A stretch of DNA of 63,662 nt, the filler included, from Guillardia theta CCMP2712 (taxonomy: Eukaryota; Protista; Cryptophyta), in assembly GCF_000315625.1 (NCBI RefSeq). It is 6 parts of 6 records of this genome, joined end to end, with 100 filler letters (N's around TTAATTAATTAA, not from the genome) between each part and the next. Parts side by side here need not be neighbours in the genome. Positions count along the whole stretch, not along the records: positions 29,646 to 50,727 come from NW_005434354.1; 5 more parts are not named here. One strand, 5' to 3'. Under the pieces are notes generated by a model that was not told where the DNA came from, did not search any database, and saw only the letters and a program-made list of their open reading frames with translations. This document shows positions 29,546 through 50,827 of the stretch, one piece after another. How positions within the stretch are numbered: position 1 is the stretch's first letter; each line of letters begins with the position of its first letter. A program made the position numbers and the translations under genes.

Positions 29546-30606
29546 NNNNNNNNNNNNNNNNNNNNNNNNNNNNNNNNNNNNNNNNNNNNTTAATTAATTA
29601 ANNNNNNNNNNNNNNNNNNNNNNNNNNNNNNNNNNNNNNNNNNNNTAAACCCTATTATTATTTGAGTTTATTAGACTCTTAGTCGAGAATTTCATAGCTA
29701 AGAACTATTGCTCTTTGCTCATCTCTCGCCTAATGATCTGTCTAAAGGGGTTCCCAACCTTGGGAGGTTGGCCCATTGTCCTATAGGCCCCTTGGGCCTG
29801 GGTGCTTCCGTATNNNNNNNNNNNNNNNNNNNNNNNNNNNNNNNNNNNNNNNNNNNNNNNNNNNNNNNNNNNNNNNNNNNNNNNNNNNNNNNNNNNNNNN
29901 NNNNNNNNNNNNNNNNNNNNNNNNNNNNNNNNNNNNNNNNNNNNNNNNNNNNNNNNNNNNNNNNNNNNNNNNNNNNNNNNNNNNNNNNNNNNNNNNNNNN
30001 NNNNNNNNNNNNNNNNNNNNNNNNNNNNNNNNNNNNNNNNNNNNNNNNNNNNNNNNNNNNNNNNNNNNNNNNNNNNNNNNNNNNNNNNNNNNNNNNNNNN
30101 NNNNNNNNNNNNNNNNNNNNNNNNNNNNNNNNNNNNNNNNNNNNNNNNNNNGGCTGTACCTTCTCCTCCCTTCATGCGGCCCATGACCTTGTGCCGCATC
30201 TGCCTCCTTCCCCTAANNNNNNNNNNNNNNNNNNNNNNNNNNNNNNNNNNNNNNNNNNNNNNNNNNNNNNNNNNNNNNNNNNNNNNNNNNNNNNNNNNNN
30301 NNNNNNNNNNNNNNNNNNNNNNNNNNNNNNNNNNNNNNNNNNNNNNNNNNNNNNNNNNNNNNNNNNNNNNNNNNNNNNNNNNNNNNNNNNNNNNNNNNNN
30401 NNNNNNNNNNNNNNNNNNNNNNNNNNNNNNNCTCTTCCCTCCAAGACCATGAGCTGCGCCTGTCCTGCCCCTTCCCCCCCCAGTCGCCCACCTCTTCCCT
30501 CCATGACCCTGAGCTGCGCCTGTCTCCTTGGTGCTAGGCTTGTTTTCCTTCCCTGCCTGTGCTCCATAGGTGGCTTGCCCATGAGCCGCGCCTGCCCCCC
30601 ATCGGA

Positions 30607-33600
30607 CTAGGTCGACTTGCTTCCCCTTCTTGCCGTCCATAGCATGTGTTGCACCACCAGCAGTTGCTTGATTGCTGCTGTCTTGATGCCTTCCCATTCC
30701 GTGTCTTCCACCCTTAGCACCCTGAAATTCTCATGCCATTCCCTTTCCATGATCGATCCTTTCACTCCTGCTATGAATGTTGCTTGTTCAACTTCATGGT
30801 CAGGTAGCAAAGCTGTGATTTCTGCTCGTAGGGGGGCATATTTCTCTTCCTTTTCCTGAAATTTCTTCTTCAGGCATTCCAGGCTTGTTTGTTCGACTCC
30901 GTCATACTCCGATGTCCTTGCAAATTCGATGAGGACAATGCGTTTGATGCTTGCAAAGTAGCAGCAACCGTCAGGTATCCAGTGCCCTTCTCGGCGCATT
31001 GAAGTCCCCATCGCTTCCATCACGATGCGTATTGGGGTGTCCCACCATGAATTGACCCGTACCCTTTGTTTCCTCCAACTCTGCTGCAGTCTTACCTTGA
31101 TCTTCTTCATGACTTCATTGTGTAGCTGAACATGACCCCAGGTTTCTTCTCGGTCTGGACAGTGAGGACAACATGGTGAGTTAGTCTTCCCCCATTGAAA
31201 GAGCTTCTTCCTCGTCGGTGCTGAGAAGGTGATCGCTTGGATAGCTGTTCGCGTGACTGACCCTTCGCATTGTTTGAACCCTCTCCCTAGTAAATCTCTT
31301 CCCACATGCATTTCGAGCATGAATTTCTCTGTCAAGGTGAGGTCTCCCGCTCGAATCCTTGCCACCATTGTCTGTTGTCTGATAATGTAGTCCCATTTCT
31401 TCAAGCGATCGAATCCTGATGTAGGATTTTCTTCTCCTGCAATGATGAATTCCATTGGACTATCGTAGATTGCTTTCTCCCATCCCGAGGCAAATGTTTG
31501 TTTTGCTTGCTTGGCCATTTCCTTTGCCTCTTGAATGTTTCTATGAGATTCTTTTGCTAGTTGGAGTCGGATCCTGATTCCCCTCCCTTCGAGTTTCCTC
31601 ATGCAAGTGAGTAACCGATCATGTAAGTCCTCCAGCAGTTCGTCTTCGTATCGCATGGTATCCATTCGCAACGTATTTGTCATAAAGCGGTGGAAACGTG
31701 TGGACTGGTACATTATTGTGACTTGATTTCCCCTTTTGATCTGTATTCCTTCCTCAAGGACATGTTGCAGAAGTAAGCCGATTGCGATTGTGTTCGCTCG
31801 GATGATGCTGCACTTCCCATTGATTTTCATCCCTCCTCCTGACGTCATCTCTTTTTGTTGGAGAACATATCCTACTCGCATGGATCTGTTTTTTCTGCCC
31901 TGCATGATGTCTCCTTCAATAGCTGCTGTGAAATGCCTTCCGCCTTGATGATGATGCCTTCCGCCTTGATGATCGCTGCACGGCTGGATCTGATCCCTTC
32001 GTCTGTTACACAGCTCCTCATACGTTGGGAGGATGTTGTCCTGAAGCTGGACTCGTAAGTATGTTGGGAGTGTGTGCCTAACTAGTATCCATAACTCCTC
32101 TGCAGTCTTCATCAAACACCTATTCCCTGATTGCCAGAAGTTTGCTGCATAAGCTATTTGAGCGCCTTTCGGGACCCGGCTGATAATTTCAAAACCTTCT
32201 GGTATCTCATCAATGTTATTCTTCCATCCTATCAGAATGACATGTATTGTATCCAGGATTTGTTCACGAAATCTCTTTTGTTTGTCCATCCAAATCACCA
32301 CTCTGTGCAGTTCCCTTGCTCTCTTCTTGTCCAGAGCCTGGGGATGTGTGTGTAGGGTAGGCCAGTTACGAAATGTACTGATGTCGCATGCTGTAATCTC
32401 TGCTAGGTGTTGTAAAAACTCGTATGCCAATGGTTGTGTTGTTTCTTGGCGAACCTCTGATACTACCTCCTCGAGTTGTTGCCACCATGCTATAGCTTCT
32501 GTTTCGCCGTCGTCCAATGCATTAACTATTTCCAGCAGCAGATGGATGCTTTGATTGCAGTCTCTTCGGTTATTACCGTCCTCTTCCCTTGTTGCAGATG
32601 TGAAGGGAGCCGAGTCCAGTGACGCTTCCAACCATTCTATTGGTGGATCCATGGTCTTGCTTTCTTCAATTTGAGATCGCTCAAAGATGGCTATGTTCCC
32701 TTGAACTTTGAAAGGTATATTGCTTGTAGTGTAACAGAATCTTTCTTGCGGATTCCCTCCTTCATCATAACAGGTGGGGTCATGTTGGAGCCACCGCCTC
32801 AAAATTACCCGGGTACAAGCCTTCGTATTCGTTTCCTCTCTCCCTTGGTCCGGTCTGGCTAGTTTCTTGTGTGGCTGAAGTTCATGTGGGCTAGCCTCCC
32901 TTTTTCCTTTCCTTCTCTTGTTTAGAGGCTTCCCCTCCTCCCTGGCTGGCCTTCTTCTCTTCCCTGTTCCTGCCTGCTCAAGTCCGAGTTTTGCCCAGAT
33001 GACATTCGCTTGCAGATATTGTGCAAGGATTTCTTCTACTTGTTCCCTTTGCTTTGGGAATGGCCAGAGTCGGATGGGCAGGTGCAGGGAGATGCCTTCG
33101 GTATCTGGGACGGGTAAGACACTTGTCATGGAGTGGAAGCCTACTTGGGGCAGTAGTCTCCATGCCTTTGCAAAACTCTCCCAGCCTTGCCGAGCAGGAG
33201 ATGTAGGTAGGGAGTTTTCTCCGGACAGCAGGGAGTTTTCTTCTGAGAGCATCTTGTCCTCCAGGTCATGTAAGATGGCTATTGTCCCCGGTTTCATCTT
33301 GCTTTCAATCATTTCCCAACTGATGGTGGTCTGCATTTTTTCCGCTATCCAGATTGCGAGTCTCTCCGGTCCTCTTATCTCTTCGTTCTCTTTGAGTCTG
33401 CCCGATCTGATTTCTCGTTGTAGCTGGTTTATTGTTTGACACCCCCATTGGTTGCACCATGATGTTAGTTTGTGGATCAGACTGCTTTTGATATCATCAT
33501 CCACCCTGCATTTCTTATTCGTTTCTTTCTCTAGATACCGAATCGCCGCCCTTCCCAAGATGGGTGCTGGATGGGGGAGTTGGAGGCCTCCTTTGTCCCA

Positions 33601-34440
33601 AGGTAGGTGAAAGATAGCGTTGCTTGTACTCTTGCTCAATCCCATAGCTCTTTTGAATGCTCTGGTCCAGAGGGTATCTAAGGTTTGTAAGTCTGACCAA
33701 GACCAGCTCACCAGTACCGCCGAGTATCTAAATATATTGACGATGCCTACCTTCACCAGGTAATATTTTTGGGCTGCCGAGTAAGCAGATGATTCAATCA
33801 GCTTTGTCAGTTCTTTTGTCTTCTCCAAGATGTGTTCTTTCTCCCCCCACGTGAAGGGGCAGGTGTGCGCCTTGTTGCCTCTTCCTCCTGGTCTCCACAA
33901 GCTGATCCGGATCCCTAGATATTTGAACCATTTCGTCGGTGGTAGGTTCACAAACTCCTTGTCGAAGAACTTGATGGTCTGTGTTCCTGGGATCTCCCTT
34001 CTTAGCCGATAATCAAAGCTGGTGATTTCAGATTTCTTCGTGTTCAGTTCTAATCCACTCCATCGACAGAATCGCTCTACCACTTGGACAAGCGTTTTCA
34101 TCTCTCTCACTGAATGTGCTATCAGGACAAGGTCGTCTGCAAATGACAGATTATTAGGGTGTTGAGTTGCAATCTCGTCTTGTTGTTGATCGAGCTGTTT
34201 GGACAAGATGCTTAGCAGAAGATTTGTTTTTGGCGGACTTGCGGGGCTGCCTTGGGGTAATCCTCTGAGAAGTGGGATGGCTGTTGTTTCGAACCTCTCT
34301 GTCTGAATTTGCAGCGCTATCCCTTGGCTACAACTGATTGCGACGTCTACATCACGCTGGTGAAAGCCGTATACTTCCATGATTTTTGCAATGGATTCGA
34401 CTGCCACATTGTTAAAGAAGTTTGCAAAGTCGAGGTACAA
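30607..34440 (-). CDS. Retrotransposon polyprotein, C-part: RT, possible RNase H-like region, zinc knuckle, restriction-like endonuclease (frameshifted from the N-part at ~34440)
   Basis: YLDFANFFNNV, GLPQGSPASP, FADDLVL, GLELNTKKS, FKYLGI, GGLQL; CPHC..ETWGH..HNEV; IPDG..IVLIEFART..KEEKYAPL..IAGVKGSI. Confidence 0.9.
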   Translation of the reverse strand: MYLDFANFFNNVAVESIAKIMEVYGFHQRDVDVAISCSQGIALQIQTERFETTAIPLLRGLPQGSPASPPKTNLLLSILSKQLDQQQDEIATQHPNNLSFADDLVLIAHSVREMKTLVQVVERFCRWSGLELNTKKSEITSFDYRLRREIPGTQTIKFFDKEFVNLPPTKWFKYLGIRISLWRPGGRGNKAHTCPFTWGEKEHILEKTKELTKLIESSAYSAAQKYYLVKVGIVNIFRYSAVLVSWSWSDLQTLDTLWTRAFKRAMGLSKSTSNAIFHLPWDKGGLQLPHPAPILGRAAIRYLEKETNKKCRVDDDIKSSLIHKLTSWCNQWGCQTINQLQREIRSGRLKENEEIRGPERLAIWIAEKMQTTISWEMIESKMKPGTIAILHDLEDKMLSEENSLLSGENSLPTSPARQGWESFAKAWRLLPQVGFHSMTSVLPVPDTEGISLHLPIRLWPFPKQREQVEEILAQYLQANVIWAKLGLEQAGTGKRRRPAREEGKPLNKRRKGKREASPHELQPHKKLARPDQGREETNTKACTRVILRRWLQHDPTCYDEGGNPQERFCYTTSNIPFKVQGNIAIFERSQIEESKTMDPPIEWLEASLDSAPFTSATREEDGNNRRDCNQSIHLLLEIVNALDDGETEAIAWWQQLEEVVSEVRQETTQPLAYEFLQHLAEITACDISTFRNWPTLHTHPQALDKKRARELHRVVIWMDKQKRFREQILDTIHVILIGWKNNIDEIPEGFEIISRVPKGAQIAYAANFWQSGNRCLMKTAEELWILVRHTLPTYLRVQLQDNILPTYEELCNRRRDQIQPCSDHQGGRHHHQGGRHFTAAIEGDIMQGRKNRSMRVGYVLQQKEMTSGGGMKINGKCSIIRANTIAIGLLLQHVLEEGIQIKRGNQVTIMYQSTRFHRFMTNTLRMDTMRYEDELLEDLHDRLLTCMRKLEGRGIRIRLQLAKESHRNIQEAKEMAKQAKQTFASGWEKAIYDSPMEFIIAGEENPTSGFDRLKKWDYIIRQQTMVARIRAGDLTLTEKFMLEMHVGRDLLGRGFKQCEGSVTRTAIQAITFSAPTRKKLFQWGKTNSPCCPHCPDREETWGHVQLHNEVMKKIKVRLQQSWRKQRVRVNSWWDTPIRIVMEAMGTSMRREGHWIPDGCCYFASIKRIVLIEFARTSEYDGVEQTSLECLKKKFQEKEEKYAPLRAEITALLPDHEVEQATFIAGVKGSIMEREWHENFRVLRVEDTEWEGIKTAAIKQLLVVQHMLWTARRGSKST

Positions 34441-37060
34441 AGTGAGCCTCCTCGATGATGTTGAGTAGCCGATGACCCTGCCTGATCGTTCCTCCCTCTG
34501 GTCTGAAACCTTCCTGGTTGTTAGTGAGTAGCTTATGTTTTTCAGCAGCTTTTGCCAGTCTGTGCGCTATGACTGCCTGGAAGATCCTCGTTATCGAGGA
34601 GAGGACGCATATAGGTCTTTGATTCTCCAAGACGTGACATATCTCATTTTTTGGGAGGAGCCTAACTCTCGCGAGCATCTTTAGTGTTTGCTTGTCTCCG
34701 ATCAAGGCTCGGCTGATTGTCTTGCCTATTTCCTCCTTTGCACTGTCAGGCAGAGCTTTCAGAATCTCGTTTGAAATCAAATCCATGCCTGCTGCTTTCC
34801 GGTTGGCCAGTTTTTGAATCCATACTTGGATCTCGCCTGGCTCCAGCGGGTAAGCTATCTCTACATCCCTGGTCGGGTGTTGATTGATTTGCTCTGGGGG
34901 TTCGAAGTCCGGTGGTTTGACGGAAGTCAGTGATTGACAGCTTTTGCAGAAGAAGAGGATTGATGCTTCTTCGTTTTTCTGGCTTTTGTCATATAACGGG
35001 ATCAGTCGTCCTTTTGTTTGACATTCAGCTCTTGCACAGGTTCCGTTCATGGTACATCCGTTGACTGCAAAGAAGGTTGCCGTGTGGGTTTCATCTTCTA
35101 GATCTCTTGCCAATCTCATGGGGAGGAATTGCTCGATGTTTTTGTATCCTTCCAGGCGCCACCCTCCTGGCTGTGTGATCAGTCCTCGGATGATGGGTAC
35201 GATTGCGTGTGCAGGCGCCAGAGTTATGAACAGCTTTTGTGTCAGTGTTGCCTGGTTCCTCGCCCCGAGAACCTCGACGTGCAGCATGGTTTGATGTCTT
35301 GCATTCCAAAAGGTTTTGCTTGATTCTTTGGAGTTGCTCTGGAGGAATGTCTCGATTAACGGGTTCAGTTCTTGAAGATATGCTGTCTCCGGCTGTTGCA
35401 GCGCTGGCTGGAGATCTCTCCATGACGTAAGTTCGATTGTGTTTGGGTGGCACTTCTCTGGCAGTTGACTCAGCATTGGGGCTTTGGGCTTAAAGTCTGA
35501 CTTCTTGCCCATTGCATTTTGAGACTCTTTACTCCCTATCGTGCCCAAGCGTCTTCTTCGTTCTTCGCATATTTTCAGGAATATCTCTTGGTCTTGTGCT
35601 GCGCAGATCTCCTTGAATTTGGTCATATTCTCTCTTATTTCTGCATGTAAGCTCGACTCCTTGTGTGCGCGATCAATAAAGTCTGGAATTTCTGAAGCGT
35701 TTCTTAAGTCCTTGTGAAGTTGCTTGATTTTGCGCTTCAGATCCATTTGAGTTTTGGATGCATGTCTTTTCCCGCTGGAGCCTCGTAGCGGAATTTCCTT
35801 GATGGGGAGGGCTGTTGTTATCAATTCGAGAATGTCGCAATCTTGATGTAGAGCTTGTGCCGCTTTTATCTTCTCATCAAGTGCTATTGCCCATTCCACG
35901 CCTAGTCTTCCCGATAGCTTGTCCATCTCGACCACCCTTTTCTTTCGTCGAGGGGTTGCTTCTCGATCCCTCCTTTGCGGGAGGATTTCAATCTTTGGGA
36001 TGGCTTGCTTACCCTCAGCATCGAGAGAGCTCACATTCACTACAAGTGCTCTGTGGTCGACTGCGGCTCCTATGATGCAATCCTCTGCGGTCTGCGATAT
36101 TAAGCTTACTGTGCGAGATGGATGGTGTAATGCAAAGACATGATCCAGTTTTGCTTGGTGATGACCTTGCTTGTACCATGTTGAGAAGGTGAAGTGCGTG
36201 CTGCTTCTGCTCATCTTCTCGCAAGTGACCATCTGTGATCGTCCAAGTTCGTTTAAGCCTTGTTCCATTCTCTCATCTGCACGGTGCACACTCGATTTGC
36301 TCCCGTATCCGACTCTCATGGGGATCTCTGGATGTTGTCGAGATGCATTGAAGTCGCCTCCTATGATGGTGAGCTTGACACTTGGCTCCGTCTTGAGCAT
36401 CTGGCTCAGCGTTGCCCACATCTCGTCTTGATCCTCCCCTTGCGCTGCAGTAGGAAAGTGGATGTTACAGATCCCTATCGGTTCTTTTTTTTCGATCTGT
36501 AAAAGTTGTATTCTTTTTTGGAGATTCTGCTCTTCCAACATGTCAGCGCGGCGGCAGAGCAGGGGGGAGGGACGAGGGAGAAGGTCCGCATGTACGAGCG
36601 TCACAAGGCGAAGATCGCTCTTACCCTTTCTCCCCTCCCCTGCACCTTTCGTCATGAACACTCGGTAGCATCCCCATTCTTTCTTGATCATCATTCGGAG
36701 ATCTGCCTCCTTTCGTTTTCCCCCGACCAAAACTTCTTGAAGTAGCACGACTGTTGGTTGATATGTTTCAATCAGGTATCCTAGGATGTGTTTCAGCACA
36801 AATTGACTGCATCCATTGACATTGTGAGAAATGATGTTGCCAGGGGCGTTGTCCTTCCTGTGCGTTTCCACCCATGCTGATTGCACTGACCTGTCGGTGG
36901 TAGTCGTGGGTGGTTTGCTGCCTGCTGGTAGGATTTGCTCCTCCGCCCCCGTTGCCCATTGAAGGTGAGACGAGTTCCCATCTTGCATCTTTGTTGGGCC
37001 TGGTAGCTCCTCCTCTCCCCTTGTCTCCTTGTCGTTCTTCGAGATTGGCGCTGTGTGCAT
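34412..37060 (-). CDS. Retrotransposon polyprotein, N-part: APE endonuclease, linker, start of RT (frame open upstream to ~37270)
   Basis: ISHNVNG, LLQEV, NIHFP, IIGGDFNA, KLDHVF, VDHRALV; then KAAGMDLISNEILK, RPICVLSSITRIF, NQEGFR. Confidence 0.9.
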   Translation of the reverse strand: MHTAPISKNDKETRGEEELPGPTKMQDGNSSHLQWATGAEEQILPAGSKPPTTTTDRSVQSAWVETHRKDNAPGNIISHNVNGCSQFVLKHILGYLIETYQPTVVLLQEVLVGGKRKEADLRMMIKKEWGCYRVFMTKGAGEGRKGKSDLRLVTLVHADLLPRPSPLLCRRADMLEEQNLQKRIQLLQIEKKEPIGICNIHFPTAAQGEDQDEMWATLSQMLKTEPSVKLTIIGGDFNASRQHPEIPMRVGYGSKSSVHRADERMEQGLNELGRSQMVTCEKMSRSSTHFTFSTWYKQGHHQAKLDHVFALHHPSRTVSLISQTAEDCIIGAAVDHRALVVNVSSLDAEGKQAIPKIEILPQRRDREATPRRKKRVVEMDKLSGRLGVEWAIALDEKIKAAQALHQDCDILELITTALPIKEIPLRGSSGKRHASKTQMDLKRKIKQLHKDLRNASEIPDFIDRAHKESSLHAEIRENMTKFKEICAAQDQEIFLKICEERRRRLGTIGSKESQNAMGKKSDFKPKAPMLSQLPEKCHPNTIELTSWRDLQPALQQPETAYLQELNPLIETFLQSNSKESSKTFWNARHQTMLHVEVLGARNQATLTQKLFITLAPAHAIVPIIRGLITQPGGWRLEGYKNIEQFLPMRLARDLEDETHTATFFAVNGCTMNGTCARAECQTKGRLIPLYDKSQKNEEASILFFCKSCQSLTSVKPPDFEPPEQINQHPTRDVEIAYPLEPGEIQVWIQKLANRKAAGMDLISNEILKALPDSAKEEIGKTISRALIGDKQTLKMLARVRLLPKNEICHVLENQRPICVLSSITRIFQAVIAHRLAKAAEKHKLLTNNQEGFRPEGGTIRQGHRLLNIIEEAHFVPRLCKLL

Positions 37061-37400
37061 TGCTTGTGGCGGAGGAGGTGGCTGGAGTGGAGAGACGGGG
37101 CATGAAGCAGGAGGTGGGGGAGAGGAGGACGTCAGGATGTCTACCTGTGCTGACCTGTCTGTAGTTGCAGGACCGTCGCGGCTATGAGCTTCGTTGATCC
37201 TTGTCCTCCTTGCTCCTGCATTACGTTCGCTTGTTGATTTTGCTTTAGATTTTTCGGAAGGGGTCCCATCTTAGGATCCATTGAAGTATGGTGGGGTGGT
37301 AGTATTAGAGTTTTATCTGCGATCAGCTGGTACCGAATATAATGTTTTTCATTTCAAATTCAGTTTCAAATCACTCGCGAAATTTTGTTGCCTGCCCGCC

Positions 37401-38429
37401 ATGCCTGCCCGTCCCCATGAGAAGGGTGTTGAAACGCGTCAGCCACGCTCTGCGGCAGTATGTGGGATTCAAACTCGTCGGGCAACCGAAGAAAGAGAAT
37501 CTTCGCTAGATACAGTCAACGAGGAACTTTATTCTGGAGTCCCTGACCATGTGAAGGAACCATTTATGCATCCCAACATTCTTCTCTGCGATTCCGTCAA
37601 TCCAGTTTGGAAGGATGACAACCTCGGCACAGCGTTACCGCTGGTCCCTGGTTGTGGTGTAACATACTCAGATGTTGACGATGGCTCAAAACGTTGTGGA
37701 GTAATCAAGCGTATCATTTCGACATGTCAATTTGAAGTTTACATGTTGTACGATAAGCAATTGCTGAAAAGGGTGGATCAAAACTTGAAATCGAATGGAG
37801 TGCCACACGGTGAAGTGGCAAGGCTGAGCAGAATTTTGAAGGATGATGAATGCCTGCAATCAATTTACTGTGAAATAATCAGTTTCGAGGACATAAATGA
37901 TGTCTTCGACTTGTCATATCCTGTGTTTCAATCTAGTGATGGACAACATGTGAAGGTGATAGGATATATTCATTTTTCCGAGCAAAGCTTAGGCAAAAAA
38001 AGTTATTGCGAATGCGCATTCTTCTCGATTCCAGACCCTGCAAAATTCATTGAAGAGATGGTGCTTTTTCAAACCAAACGCTTACCATCTCACTTTTTTT
38101 TCACAGTCCGAAGAGATATCGAAACATTCAAAGATTGTTTCCACAAGTGGTTGGTCGCGCGGGGATCTGTGTTTGAGAAGAGAGGTATTAAGGAGTTGGA
38201 GTTTTCCTGCCCCGATGTCCAAATCAGCAGCATTCTATCATTGATCCCAACAGAAGTTCGACAGAAAATCTCTGTGAAACGTCAGCTCAAGTTCTACAAA
38301 TGGTTCCTTGGTGAGGAGGTGGTGGAGCATCCATTGTTTGCTCGTGTTTTCGATGTTCCACTTGTCAGGAATCCCAGACCTTTGCCGAATTTGTCCAGAG
38401 TATATGTGCAATTGCCGATGGCGCTGTAA
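37401..38429 (+). CDS. Intronless hypothetical protein, possible BAH-like domain
   Basis: 343-codon ORF from MPARP; segment GCGVTY..GVIKRI..FEVYMLY..DECLQSIYCEIISFEDINDVF loosely resembles BAH. Confidence 0.6.
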   Translation: MPARPHEKGVETRQPRSAAVCGIQTRRATEERESSLDTVNEELYSGVPDHVKEPFMHPNILLCDSVNPVWKDDNLGTALPLVPGCGVTYSDVDDGSKRCGVIKRIISTCQFEVYMLYDKQLLKRVDQNLKSNGVPHGEVARLSRILKDDECLQSIYCEIISFEDINDVFDLSYPVFQSSDGQHVKVIGYIHFSEQSLGKKSYCECAFFSIPDPAKFIEEMVLFQTKRLPSHFFFTVRRDIETFKDCFHKWLVARGSVFEKRGIKELEFSCPDVQISSILSLIPTEVRQKISVKRQLKFYKWFLGEEVVEHPLFARVFDVPLVRNPRPLPNLSRVYVQLPMAL

Positions 38430-48190: not shown

Positions 48191-48871
48191 CCTCTTCTTG
48201 TGATCTTGCTATCTACGAACTGACCTGCAGTGCAAAGGAACTCGTTTCATCTGCTCTCTTTCTTTCTCTCCCCTCCCCTTCTCCATGTCGCTCGGCACCC
48301 ATAGATTCCAGAAATAGAAACTTCAAACTTTAAACTTTGAAGACTCCGAGCTCAAACTTTCAGTCAAACTCCAAAAGTTTCCCTACAATGCGAGCGGGGA
48401 GGTGGCATTTCGATGGGATGGTGGAATGCTTGGAAGGGAAGGAGGAGGAGGAGAGGAGGAGAGGAGGAGAGGAGGAGAGGAGGAGAGGAGGAGAGGAGGA
48501 CAGGAGATGGAAGGAAGGATTGAACGAAGTATGAAGATAACAGCTACAGGGAATGAAGGGGATCAGGGGATCAAAGGAAAGGAAGAGGCAGTGTCAGAGT
48601 GCGAGGAGGAGGTGCGAGGAGGAGGTGGAGTGTTGTTGTGAAGTGGGGGGAGGGGTAGCTGCTGGGAGCAGCGGAAGGGCAGAGAGAAAGCAGGGAAGAG
48701 AGGAGCAAGGAAGGTAGGAGAGGAGGGAGGGAGATCCCAAATGAAAGGCAGCAAGAATCAAAGTGTGCTATACGTCCTTCACGCGTCATGTGAGGGGGCA
48801 GAGATCAAGGGAGGATGAATGAATGAAGAGAATGATTGTTGGGTAGAGGAGCAGGCATCGGTCGGTACGAG

Positions 48872-50632
48872 ATGGCATCGCATGTTCCTCGACCCCCTCA
48901 GTCTGTTCCTCCACATGCCCCACATGCTCCGGTAAGCTCAGAACGTCCTCTTGCTCCTCCTTTGCTCACACCTTCTCCTACAGCCTCCTGTTCGCAGCCA
49001 AACTTCGCTCCCTACCGAAGCTGCTCCTCGTCCGCCGAGGTCTGCCTCCTCCGCATTGTTCAGCTGTTCCTGACATGCTGGCAGCGCACCGGGAGCAGAA
49101 ACTTCGAGGTCCTCCCACCCTCCTGGTCGTCGAACTTAGTGACAGGTAGCGCAGGCTTGAAGCTTTGGCGTTCAAAGTCATGCGACTTAATCGCCCTTCC
49201 TTCCACCAGGTCCCATCCTCCTTCATCCTCCCCTTCTCCCTCCCCCATCCTCCTCTCCTTTCTCCTCCTCCTCTTCTCTTGTACCTCAACGACCTCCTCT
49301 TCTTGACCTGGTCGCGATCACTTCCTGCTCCCTCTCTCCTCCTGGTCATCAACCCTCTGCCCATTTCCCTTGTCCTGGTCTTCTCTCCTCCTCCTCCTCC
49401 TCCTCCTCCTCCTCCTCCTCCTCCTCCTCCTCCTCCTCCTCCTCCTCCTCCTCCTCCTCCTCTCCTGCTCGCTGTATCTGATTGTATATCAGGCTGGTTT
49501 CACCGCCGGGCTGCAAGCGCTCAGGGAGACTGCGAGCGATCAAGCAGAGCAGGCGACCGGTCACCTTCCTCATTCCGATGCAGAAGGATGTCCCAGCGAG
49601 AACCTCCTCCTCCCCACTGTAAGCCTCCCGTCTCCGCCCTCCCCCTTCCCCGTCCTCCGTTCCCTCTGCCCGTGCTTGAGTCTCGCTACACCCTCCTCCT
49701 TCCAGCACCTCCTCCTCCTCTCCTCCTCATCATCATCGTGTCTACCAGCTCGTCCCTTCACTTTCGCTCTTGCAGGGCTTCGGCAACATCTACTTAGGAG
49801 AAACCTTCACTGCTTACATCAGCGCTTGGTGACCGTTCTACCTCCTCCTTCCTCCTTCCTCCTTCCGTTCCTCCCTCCTCCCTCCTCCCCGTCCGCCCCT
49901 CCTCCTCCTGTTTTCCATTTCTCTTATCTCCTCGCTGCTCCCTCACTTCTCCTCCTCCTGCTTGCCAACCTTCCCTCCCACACCTTCTGTGACTGTCGCT
50001 ACAAACGTCTGCTGAGTTCTGAATGTTGGGAGCAGCAACACAAGTGGTAGCCGGCTGATGCGGCTAGAGATCAGGTATGTCACTCTCCTCCTCCCCCTCC
50101 TCATCCTCATCCTCGTTCTTCTCCTCCTCCTCCTCCTCCTCATTCCCTCTACCGCCTGACCCCTCCGTAACTTCCTCCTCCGCCCCTTCCTCATCACCTT
50201 TCTCCTCCTCCCTCACTCTCCTCCCTCGCAGGGCAGAAATCCAGACGGGCACCAAGCGCGTCCCGCTGCTGGACGGCAAGCCGGTGCTGCCGCATGCAAG
50301 GATGCGCCGCGGGAGCTGATGGGGGGGAGCAGGAGACTGTGCTGGCGCAGTTCGAGTCCAACCAGCAAGTTGACTACATCGTGTCCCACGAGCTGAAGGA
50401 AGCAGGTGAAGGGAGGGGGGGAGGAGGAGGAGGAGGAGGAGGAGGAGGAGGAGGAGGAGGAGGTTGAAAGGACTGGTGAAGTTGTGATAGGTGTGCACAT
50501 AATGATTTGCTCGGGAAGCTACCTGGATGCTTCAGGGGAGGAGAAGAAGGTAAGGGGGAGGGGTCCTGCCTCCTTATCCTCGACTTCTCATATCCTTTCT
50601 CTCGTCAGGTCCGACAATACTTCAAGTTCCAG
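48872..50632 (+). CDS. TRAPPC13: Trafficking protein particle complex subunit 13 (5' part; truncated by gap)
   Basis: LAFKVMRLNRPSF, LLLPT|GFGNIYLGETFTAYIS, AEIQTGTKRVPL, DYIVSHELKEAGVHIMICSGSY, RQYFKFQV. Confidence 0.92.
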
Positions 50633-50827
50633 GTTCCACTCTCTTCCTCCTCCACCTCCTCCTTATCCTCATGCTCCTCCTCCTCCTCTTCATCCTCCTC
50701 CTTCTCCTCTCCTGCCTCCTCCGCCCTNNNNNNNNNNNNNNNNNNNNNNNNNNNNNNNNNNNNNNNNNNNNTTAATTAATTAANNNNNNNNNNNNNNNNN
50801 NNNNNNNNNNNNNNNNNNNNNNNNNNN

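Follow-up and report, generated by a model that had tools for sequence, protein, structure and literature searches.

Long interspersed nuclear elements (LINEs) that are specific for telomere repeats are known from a few lineages, namely the insect TRAS/SART elements, the fungal MoTeR elements, and elements of Giardia and Chlorella, and they are the main models for target choice by retrotransposons and for their coexistence with, or replacement of, telomerase. The Dualen (RandI) elements, reportedly described from Chlamydomonas by Kojima and Fujiwara in 2005, are defined by the presence of an apurinic/apyrimidinic-type endonuclease (APE) and a restriction-like endonuclease (RLE) in one non-LTR element (LTR, long terminal repeat). 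Here we analyze a stretch of 63,662 nucleotides from the Guillardia theta CCMP2712 assembly, hereafter the window, whose minus strand carries a feature (~37,27x to 29,653) that has the same two endonucleases. This feature is very probably a dead, 5'-truncated Dualen-group non-LTR retrotransposon of a Guillardia-like cryptophyte, from a lineage specific for the TTTAGGG telomeric repeat. The window copy is an inactive relic, and its interest rests with its lineage.

Dualen elements with the architecture SET-C48-APE-RT-RNH-CCHC-RLE (Dualen-1_GCr) have been described from cryptophytes (Lescot et al. 2016, PMC5029228). The element studied here shares with them the host group and the order of C48 peptidase, APE, reverse transcriptase (RT), RNase H position, CCHC zinc knuckle, and RLE. 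Its assignment to Dualen rests on this domain architecture and on the cryptophyte Dualen architecture shared by its nearest long relatives, that of relatives P0017 to P0025 being the published one. The published elements were rebuilt from transcripts, with no target preference reported; in the elements described here, in contrast, no SET domain was detected, RNase H is not recognizable, and an additional open reading frame (ORF), ORFa, is present. In Chlamydomonas, Dualens show either a dispersed distribution or enrichment at centromeres, and active insertions produce very long target duplications (Dualen-4b_cRei, PMC9977147), whereas the elements described here lie in telomere repeats in a fixed register.

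With SART1 and TRAS1 of Bombyx mori (R1 clade) these elements share fixed-phase telomeric insertion, head-to-tail arrays between repeats, and the SART-like orientation, in which sense strand and G strand coincide and priming is from the C strand (PMC7265360); the APE model is also a structural match to the TRAS1 endonuclease (1wdu). However, SART and TRAS elements have an APE only, a poly(A) tail, a gag-like ORF1, and a TTAGG target, whereas the element described here combines APE with RLE, carries a C48 peptidase, and ends in a (TAA)n tail; its RT is nearer in sequence to R2 than to L1. Membership of the R1 clade (TRAS/SART proper) was rejected on the presence of RLE, C48 peptidase, and (TAA)n tail.

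MoTeR1 of Magnaporthe oryzae, a CRE-like, RLE-bearing non-LTR element, lies in telomere repeats at chromosome ends and has 5'-terminal tandem repeats. It differs in lacking an APE and in clade and host, and its 5' repeats are telomere-like, unlike the 19- to 23-nt 5' units found here. R2 is the best structural match for the region of CCHC and RLE (9dou, 9nl2, 9nl3, and 8gh6) and the best PDB sequence match for the RT, but it targets 28S rDNA, has N-terminal zinc finger/Myb DNA-binding domains, and has no APE. R2 uses site-specific target-primed reverse transcription (TPRT), a route that we infer for the present element.

A telomere-specific Dualen in a cryptophyte had been put forward as novel in an earlier, sequence-only reading of the window. 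Cryptophyte Dualens had already been described in 2016 (PMC5029228); as to the target, a full-text literature search, with Repbase entries outside its scope, found no description of telomere targeting by a Dualen. A 2025 repeat survey reported LINE/Dualen expansion in all cryptophytes except G. theta, in which it recorded no LINE/Dualen (PMC12747079); contrary to that survey, Dualen-type elements are present at the ends of G. theta scaffolds JH993060, JH993178, JH993082, and JH993022. Overall, the comparison supports the view that an established element group has a target specificity familiar from other groups, one that we have not found reported for Dualen.

Junctions, orientation, and arrays at the telomere repeat

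The relatives used to examine junctions were chosen by protein similarity and not by the junctions themselves, and about 10 loci were sampled. One of them, L006, was found via RLE peptide patterns and a trimmed protein alignment; the 26-nt 3' end, sought as an exact pattern among JGI metagenome contigs, gave no match. Two loci, L002 and L009, stop short of the element 3' end and are uninformative for 3' junctions.

All five informative copies have a telomeric 3' junction, in a single register. The window piece that holds the element (29646-50727) begins with TAAACCCT, followed by ATTATTATTTGAG, and the minus strand thus reads ...CTCAAATAATAATA/GGGTTTA (29646-29663; the slash marks the junction). 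Here the (TAA)n-TA 3' tail (29653..29663, minus strand), whose terminal TA may instead be target (2-nt microhomology), is followed at the contig edge by a telomere repeat fragment, GGGTTTA in element sense (29646..29652, minus strand). The register is the same in four independent relatives. In L001 (ENA metagenome, 87% nucleotide identity), the junction (TAA)6-TA/GGG is followed by (TTTAGGG)3 (3.5 repeats) and then by a conserved non-telomeric sequence, and in L006 (JGI metagenome, 83% nucleotide identity), (TAA)4-TA/GGG leads into (TTTAGGG)15, which runs up to the contig end. In G. theta, L003 (in the final 11 kb of the 292-kb scaffold JH993060) has TCTAATAAAATCGAC(TAC)4-TA/GGG with (TTTAGGG)12 and then the conserved sequence of L001, and L005 (JH993082) has (TAA)6-TA/GGG with (TTTAGGG)6 and then 15 copies of a 19-nt unit. 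Tail length differs among the copies, the window having (TAA)3.

The window tail is separated from the coding region by the 3' untranslated region (UTR; 29664..30606, minus strand), which contains a TCTAATAAA motif, a ~60-nt tandem repeat (family D6), and two N gaps (29814-30151 and 30217-30431). Both gaps lie within the tandem repeat and downstream of the ORF2 stop codon (30607-30609), so that no reading frame crosses them. The three UTR pieces delimited by the gaps have the same order and strand in the uninterrupted metagenome copies L001 and L006 (83 to 87% identical): window 30700-30501 corresponds to L001 2980-3178 and L006 4294-4492, window 30209-30152 to L001 3150-3231 and L006 4468-4524, and window 29813-29646 to L001 3369-3529 and L006 4680-4851. 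This collinearity places the window 3' end piece where the element's 3' end belongs, and the order of the pieces across the gaps is thereby supported at the level of sequence alignment. Two ORFs of 330 and 300 aa at 29705-30697 were rejected as artefacts, since they pass through N and tandem repeat.

At the other end, all seven element 5' ends, representing three diverged lineages, directly follow TTTAGG/ or TTTAGGG/. A homologue of ORFa opens ~100 nt into the conserved sequence behind the repeat blocks of L001 and L003, which identifies this sequence as the 5' end of the next element, and the 19-nt units in L005 also form the 5' end of the next element. The L003 element is itself an internally deleted copy and lies after (TTTAGGG)5. 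In L004, host genes are followed by a 16-nt variant array, by (TTTAGGG)12, and then by a window-type element 5' end with 23-nt 5' repeats, and in L010 (the final 11 kb of the 514-kb scaffold JH993022), a (TTTAGGG)5 block is followed by the 20-nt 5' repeats of a third lineage, which continues to the scaffold end.

The sense strand is the G strand at every locus. The four G. theta loci, which lie 1.4 to 15 kb from a scaffold end, point outward, i.e., toward the scaffold or contig end, as do L006 and the window copy (6/6). Elements form head-to-tail arrays, and the number of repeats between them ranges from 2 to 15 or more. Three diverged element lineages are represented at the four G. theta scaffold ends, and copies of one of them (lineage B) on different scaffolds are 99.7 to 100% identical, indicating recent activity.

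These patterns support, as far as sequence comparison goes, specific insertion of the Guillardia-type lineage into the TTTAGGG repeat in a single orientation that aligns the sense strand with the G strand. The sequence-only reading had noted a (TAA)n tail meeting telomere repeat at the start of a contig and had proposed a dual-endonuclease element, telomere-repeat targeting, and a SART-like orientation; these three points are supported here. We also lean toward a broader statement, namely that at least three Dualen lineages in Guillardia-type cryptophytes are strictly TTTAGGG-specific and build subtelomeres.

Three further features of these loci were recorded. The variant 16-nt array in L004 (GTCGGGTTTAGGGTTT, ~7 copies, L004:6011-6128) separates the last host gene from the perfect TTTAGGG run and resembles a degenerate proximal telomere; host genes, array, and repeats together look like a native subtelomere. 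Directly after the telomere repeat there are lineage-specific 5' arrays of a 19-nt unit (15 copies, L005:21668-21954), a 23-nt unit (9 copies, L004:6295-6496), and a 20-nt unit (L010:3778 onward); these short tandem units may be promoter-carrying 5' monomers. The internally deleted element of L003 (L003:7311-9834, 2.5 kb; GUITHDRAFT_116523, P0006) is an annotated gene in which an N-terminal portion of ORFa is joined to the C-terminal RLE. The element has canonical 5' and 3' ends and lies between two telomere blocks, and it is therefore probably a non-autonomous derivative mobilized in trans.

Contrary observations and alternative explanations

Several observations weigh against such a specificity. 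The telomere repeat at the window junction consists of 7 to 9 nt only, with a chance probability of ~6e-5 at a fixed phase and position, and is weak evidence taken alone. No TTTAGGG or CCCTAAA heptamer occurs inside the window piece, and none occurs at the 5' junction of the window copy, where a deletion, a rearrangement, or insertion at an end that was broken or very short is possible. The sampled loci, about 10 in number, are all telomeric, and scaffold ends are enriched in repeats in any assembly. Among Logan contigs matching the 168-nt 3' end, a TAAACCC junction was present in metagenome run X1 only, in a contig with the same junction as the window and a tail 9 nt longer; absence of the junction from such k-mer contigs is, however, weak evidence, because they break in variable (TAA)n runs. 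In two organisms (A and B), depth over the 3' end is very high and several of the loose ends past the tail consist of non-telomeric sequence, and 3'-UTR-like fragments (75 to 98 nt, ~90% identical) lie within longer non-telomeric contigs. Insertion specificity may therefore not be absolute. The fragments map to window positions 29679-29753 (runs X9 and X32) and have identical flanks in both organisms; they could be old or rearranged, or could belong to another repeat with the same module.

Subtelomeres gather transposons in many genomes, and elements without any sequence-specific target could have built up there through tolerated insertions, ectopic recombination, and telomerase healing of broken ends. 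The 5' junction of the window copy, which has no telomere repeat, and the 3' fragments in non-telomeric contigs would both fit such a history. It would not account for 3' junctions that agree to the nucleotide in five copies whose lineages are only 52% identical in protein, for 5' junctions that fall in just two neighboring phases of the 7-nt repeat, or for the uniform orientation at 6/6 loci, and we consider it unlikely.

The TTTAGGG units could alternatively be RNA templated as the element's own 3' end, (UAA)n(GGGUUUA)m, in which case integration could occur anywhere and the repeats would be uninformative about the target. Tandem-repeat tails are known in other LINE families, and repeats stand directly behind the tail in every 3' end seen here. 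This explanation nevertheless appears quite unlikely from the 5' side of the elements: in L004 and L010 a repeat block precedes the element 5' end without any element tail upstream of it, and the L004 block comes after host genes and the variant telomere-like array. Moreover, repeat number varies from 2 to at least 15, and the blocks lead either to a contig end or to the 5' end of an element in the same orientation, never to random unique DNA.

The position of the elements at scaffold ends might also suggest endonuclease-independent end attachment, as for HeT-A/TART and endonuclease-deficient Penelope-like elements, with the natural 3' G-overhang priming reverse transcription. Priming from the G strand would turn the 3' tail toward the centromere, whereas the observed tail always faces the end, and the catalytic residues of both endonucleases are kept across the family. 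HeT-A-like priming was rejected on this orientation (sense strand equal to G strand, tail toward the end), and end attachment in general is very improbable. Finally, it is barely credible that the 8 nt at the contig edge are a chance match or an assembly or trimming artefact and the 3' piece foreign to the element, given that, despite the 7 to 9 visible nt and the two gaps of estimated length between ORF and tail, two relatives that lack gaps and come from independent assemblies are collinear with the 3' UTR pieces and the same junction occurs with long repeat runs in several other assemblies.

Specific insertion into the TTTAGGG repeat is not a property of Dualens in general. Telomere repeats are lacking from two distant Dualens, L007 and L008, and the telomere association is a trait of the Guillardia-type lineages. 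The L008 contig (L008:10985-20607) has another RNase_H ORF and, beside the first Dualen, a further copy in inverted orientation, again with no telomere repeats, which suggests that non-telomeric Dualens of another organism are clustered or nested.

Family, domains, and the window copy

An exhaustive HMMER search (E <= 1e-3) returned 313 relatives. The long ones are metagenomic, with 31 to 33% RT identity and the order C48 peptidase, APE, RVT_1, RNase_H, zf-RVT, and RLE. Nearer relatives include Hanusia phi transcripts (45 to 47% identity), G. theta gene models (52 to 83%), and metagenome contigs (76 to 87%), and MMETSP transcripts fall into clusters with these element proteins. A full-length element is present in G. 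theta scaffold JH993178 (L004), in which ORFa (793 aa) is followed by an ORF with C48 and APE; this ORFa is homologous to a 745-aa ORF of the second lineage (30% identity, E = 3e-81). Peptidase_C48 lies upstream of APE in L004, L005, and P0020. The full-length order in the relatives is ORFa (~750 to 790 aa), C48, APE, RT, RNase-H-position region, CCHC, RLE, and a 3' UTR with a (TAA)n end.

The window copy retains part of this order in two minus-strand frames. ORF1 (37060-34415, 882 aa) contains a weak Pfam Exo_endo_phos match (E = 1.6e-4) and RVT_1 positions 1-54, and ORF2 (34440-30610, 1277 aa) contains RVT_1 positions 73-205 (E = 1e-17), a weak zf-RVT match, and a PD-x14-E motif. With the RVT_1 halves in two frames, the RT domain (33571..34663, minus strand) is divided between ORF1 and ORF2. 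The frameshift is particular to the window copy, which has 23 nt fewer than the intact relative L006, and alignment with L006 places the deletion site at 34440..34442 (minus strand), between the peptides IIEEAH and LYLDFANFF. A single open frame of 1461 aa spans this site in L006, and the non-LTR RT, which sits between APE and RLE, is unbroken there. The best PDB sequence matches of the RT are R2 RTs (E = 2e-10, compared with 3e-5 for L1 ORF2p).

The APE-type endonuclease of the window copy (36026..36838, minus strand) was identified by Pfam, conservation, and an AlphaFold2 model compared with Foldseek. In 17 homologues the GDxN, D, LD, and DH positions are invariant and the N and Q(E/D) positions nearly so, and the window copy has all of them (catalytic N, E, GDFN, D, and DH). 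A structural model was needed to recognize the fold, because a phmmer search of ORF1 against PDB sequences gave no match. The model (mean predicted local distance difference test [pLDDT] score, 80) matched the ExoIII homologue Mth0212, the L1 endonuclease, the TRAS1 endonuclease (1wdu), and TDP2, with E values of ~1e-11 and a target-normalized TM score of ~0.7, and the N-terminal domain is confirmed at the level of this model as an endonuclease/exonuclease/phosphatase (EEP)/APE fold.

The RLE (30610..30993, minus strand) has the motifs IPDG (30967-30978), LIEFAR (30916-30933), and K..KY (30838-30870). Its P, D, E, K, and Y residues are invariant in 30 homologues (PDG...x14...E..R...K...KY), in which it stands behind a CX2C...H...C knuckle. 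Modeling of the RLE region of an intact family member (P0001:790-1017) gave a pLDDT of 93.6, and the seven best Foldseek matches in PDB were all R2 proteins (9dou, 9nl2, 9nl3, 8gh6, 8iby, 8ibw, and 8ibz; TMq 0.68 to 0.73, E = 3e-8 to 5e-5), followed by viral cap-snatching PD-(D/E)xK nucleases. The modeled structure confirms the C-terminal domain as CCHC plus a PD-(D/E)xK fold like that of the R2 RLE. The frameshifted APE-RT-Cys/His-RLE element first read from the sequence is upheld, on the minus strand, by the ORFs, Pfam, and the deletion relative to L006, and both predicted endonuclease folds agree with the structural models.

The CCHC zinc knuckle of the window copy (CPHC...H; 31111..31173, minus strand) is damaged: a 12-aa (36-nt) in-frame deletion, seen in alignment with P0001 and P0003, has removed its last Cys. 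Between RT and CCHC, where the distant relatives P0017 to P0025 have RNase_H, the RNase-H-position region (31486..31881, minus strand) has no recognizable catalytic residues and is either degenerate or not RNase H. No Pfam RNase_H match was obtained there or elsewhere in the window lineage, and hhalign of the region against the RNase_H of the relatives gave a probability of 0.1%. An exact 20-nt direct duplication with copies 21 nt apart (window 31933-31973) occurs within ORF2 and doubles the peptide HQGGRH; the 7 extra residues are not present in the close relative P0001.

Upstream of ORF1, tblastx and tblastn comparison with L004 and L005 identified an extension in the ORF1 frame and an approximate 5' truncation point (37061..37273, minus strand). 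The homology fades between ~37130 and 37273, so that the window copy is 5' truncated and lacks the ORFa and C48 peptidase of full-length relatives. The span first assigned to the element, 29646-37265, thus holds for a minus-strand element, with 37265 as an approximate 5' end only. A 382-aa ORF on the plus strand (37281-38429) abuts the truncated 5' end with no telomere repeat between them; it matches no Pfam family and no exact database record. Pfam searches of six flank ORFs yielded nothing useful, and the window flank matched none of the G. theta loci compared. Near the far end of the piece (48420-50727) there are long purine/pyrimidine microsatellites of the GGA/CCT type in inverted arrangement, with arms of 50 to 73 nt that are 86 to 98% complementary.

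Proposed insertion mechanism and its significance

The mechanism proposed here builds on the domain folds, junction register, orientation, arrays, and scaffold-end position, which were observed directly or in models; the nick positions, the steps of TPRT, and any division of labor between APE and RLE are our interpretation of them. Because the junction ...TA/GGGTTTA is constant, an element endonuclease would nick the C strand at CCCTA^AA or, should the terminal TA be part of the tail, at CCC^TAAA. The freed 3'-OH would pair with the ...UAAUA end of the RNA, as the 2-nt TA ambiguity would allow, and would prime cDNA synthesis by TPRT. The 5' junction positions suggest that the G strand is broken at or next to TTTAGG^G, which would generate a duplication of 2 to 5 bp (modulo 7). 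Given that the sense strand equals the G strand and that the tail points toward the chromosome end, a C-strand 3'-OH would have to prime the cDNA, as in the geometry of SART1 (PMC7265360). Natural chromosome ends do not offer such a 3'-OH, so that an endonuclease nick would be required. Distal repeats may then persist or be re-extended by telomerase, and renewed insertion could produce the head-to-tail arrays with 2 to at least 15 repeats between elements.

The elements also bear on genome annotation, since parts of them have been annotated in G. theta as the gene models GUITHDRAFT_116523, 121183, 117917, and 153799. If the specificity is true, the Guillardia-type elements would be the first telomere-specific lineage within the dual-endonuclease group, and the SART/TRAS lifestyle would have arisen independently in a protist that retains canonical telomere repeats. 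A Dualen on a 7-bp repeat would be an independent case from a distant eukaryotic supergroup and from the sole LINE group that has both the ancestral RLE and the derived APE. It would also provide a natural system in which to ask which endonuclease cuts which strand of a defined 7-bp target: because the elements have a short, repeated target that is defined at nucleotide level, the roles of the two endonucleases of Dualen, an old question, would be directly testable in vitro.

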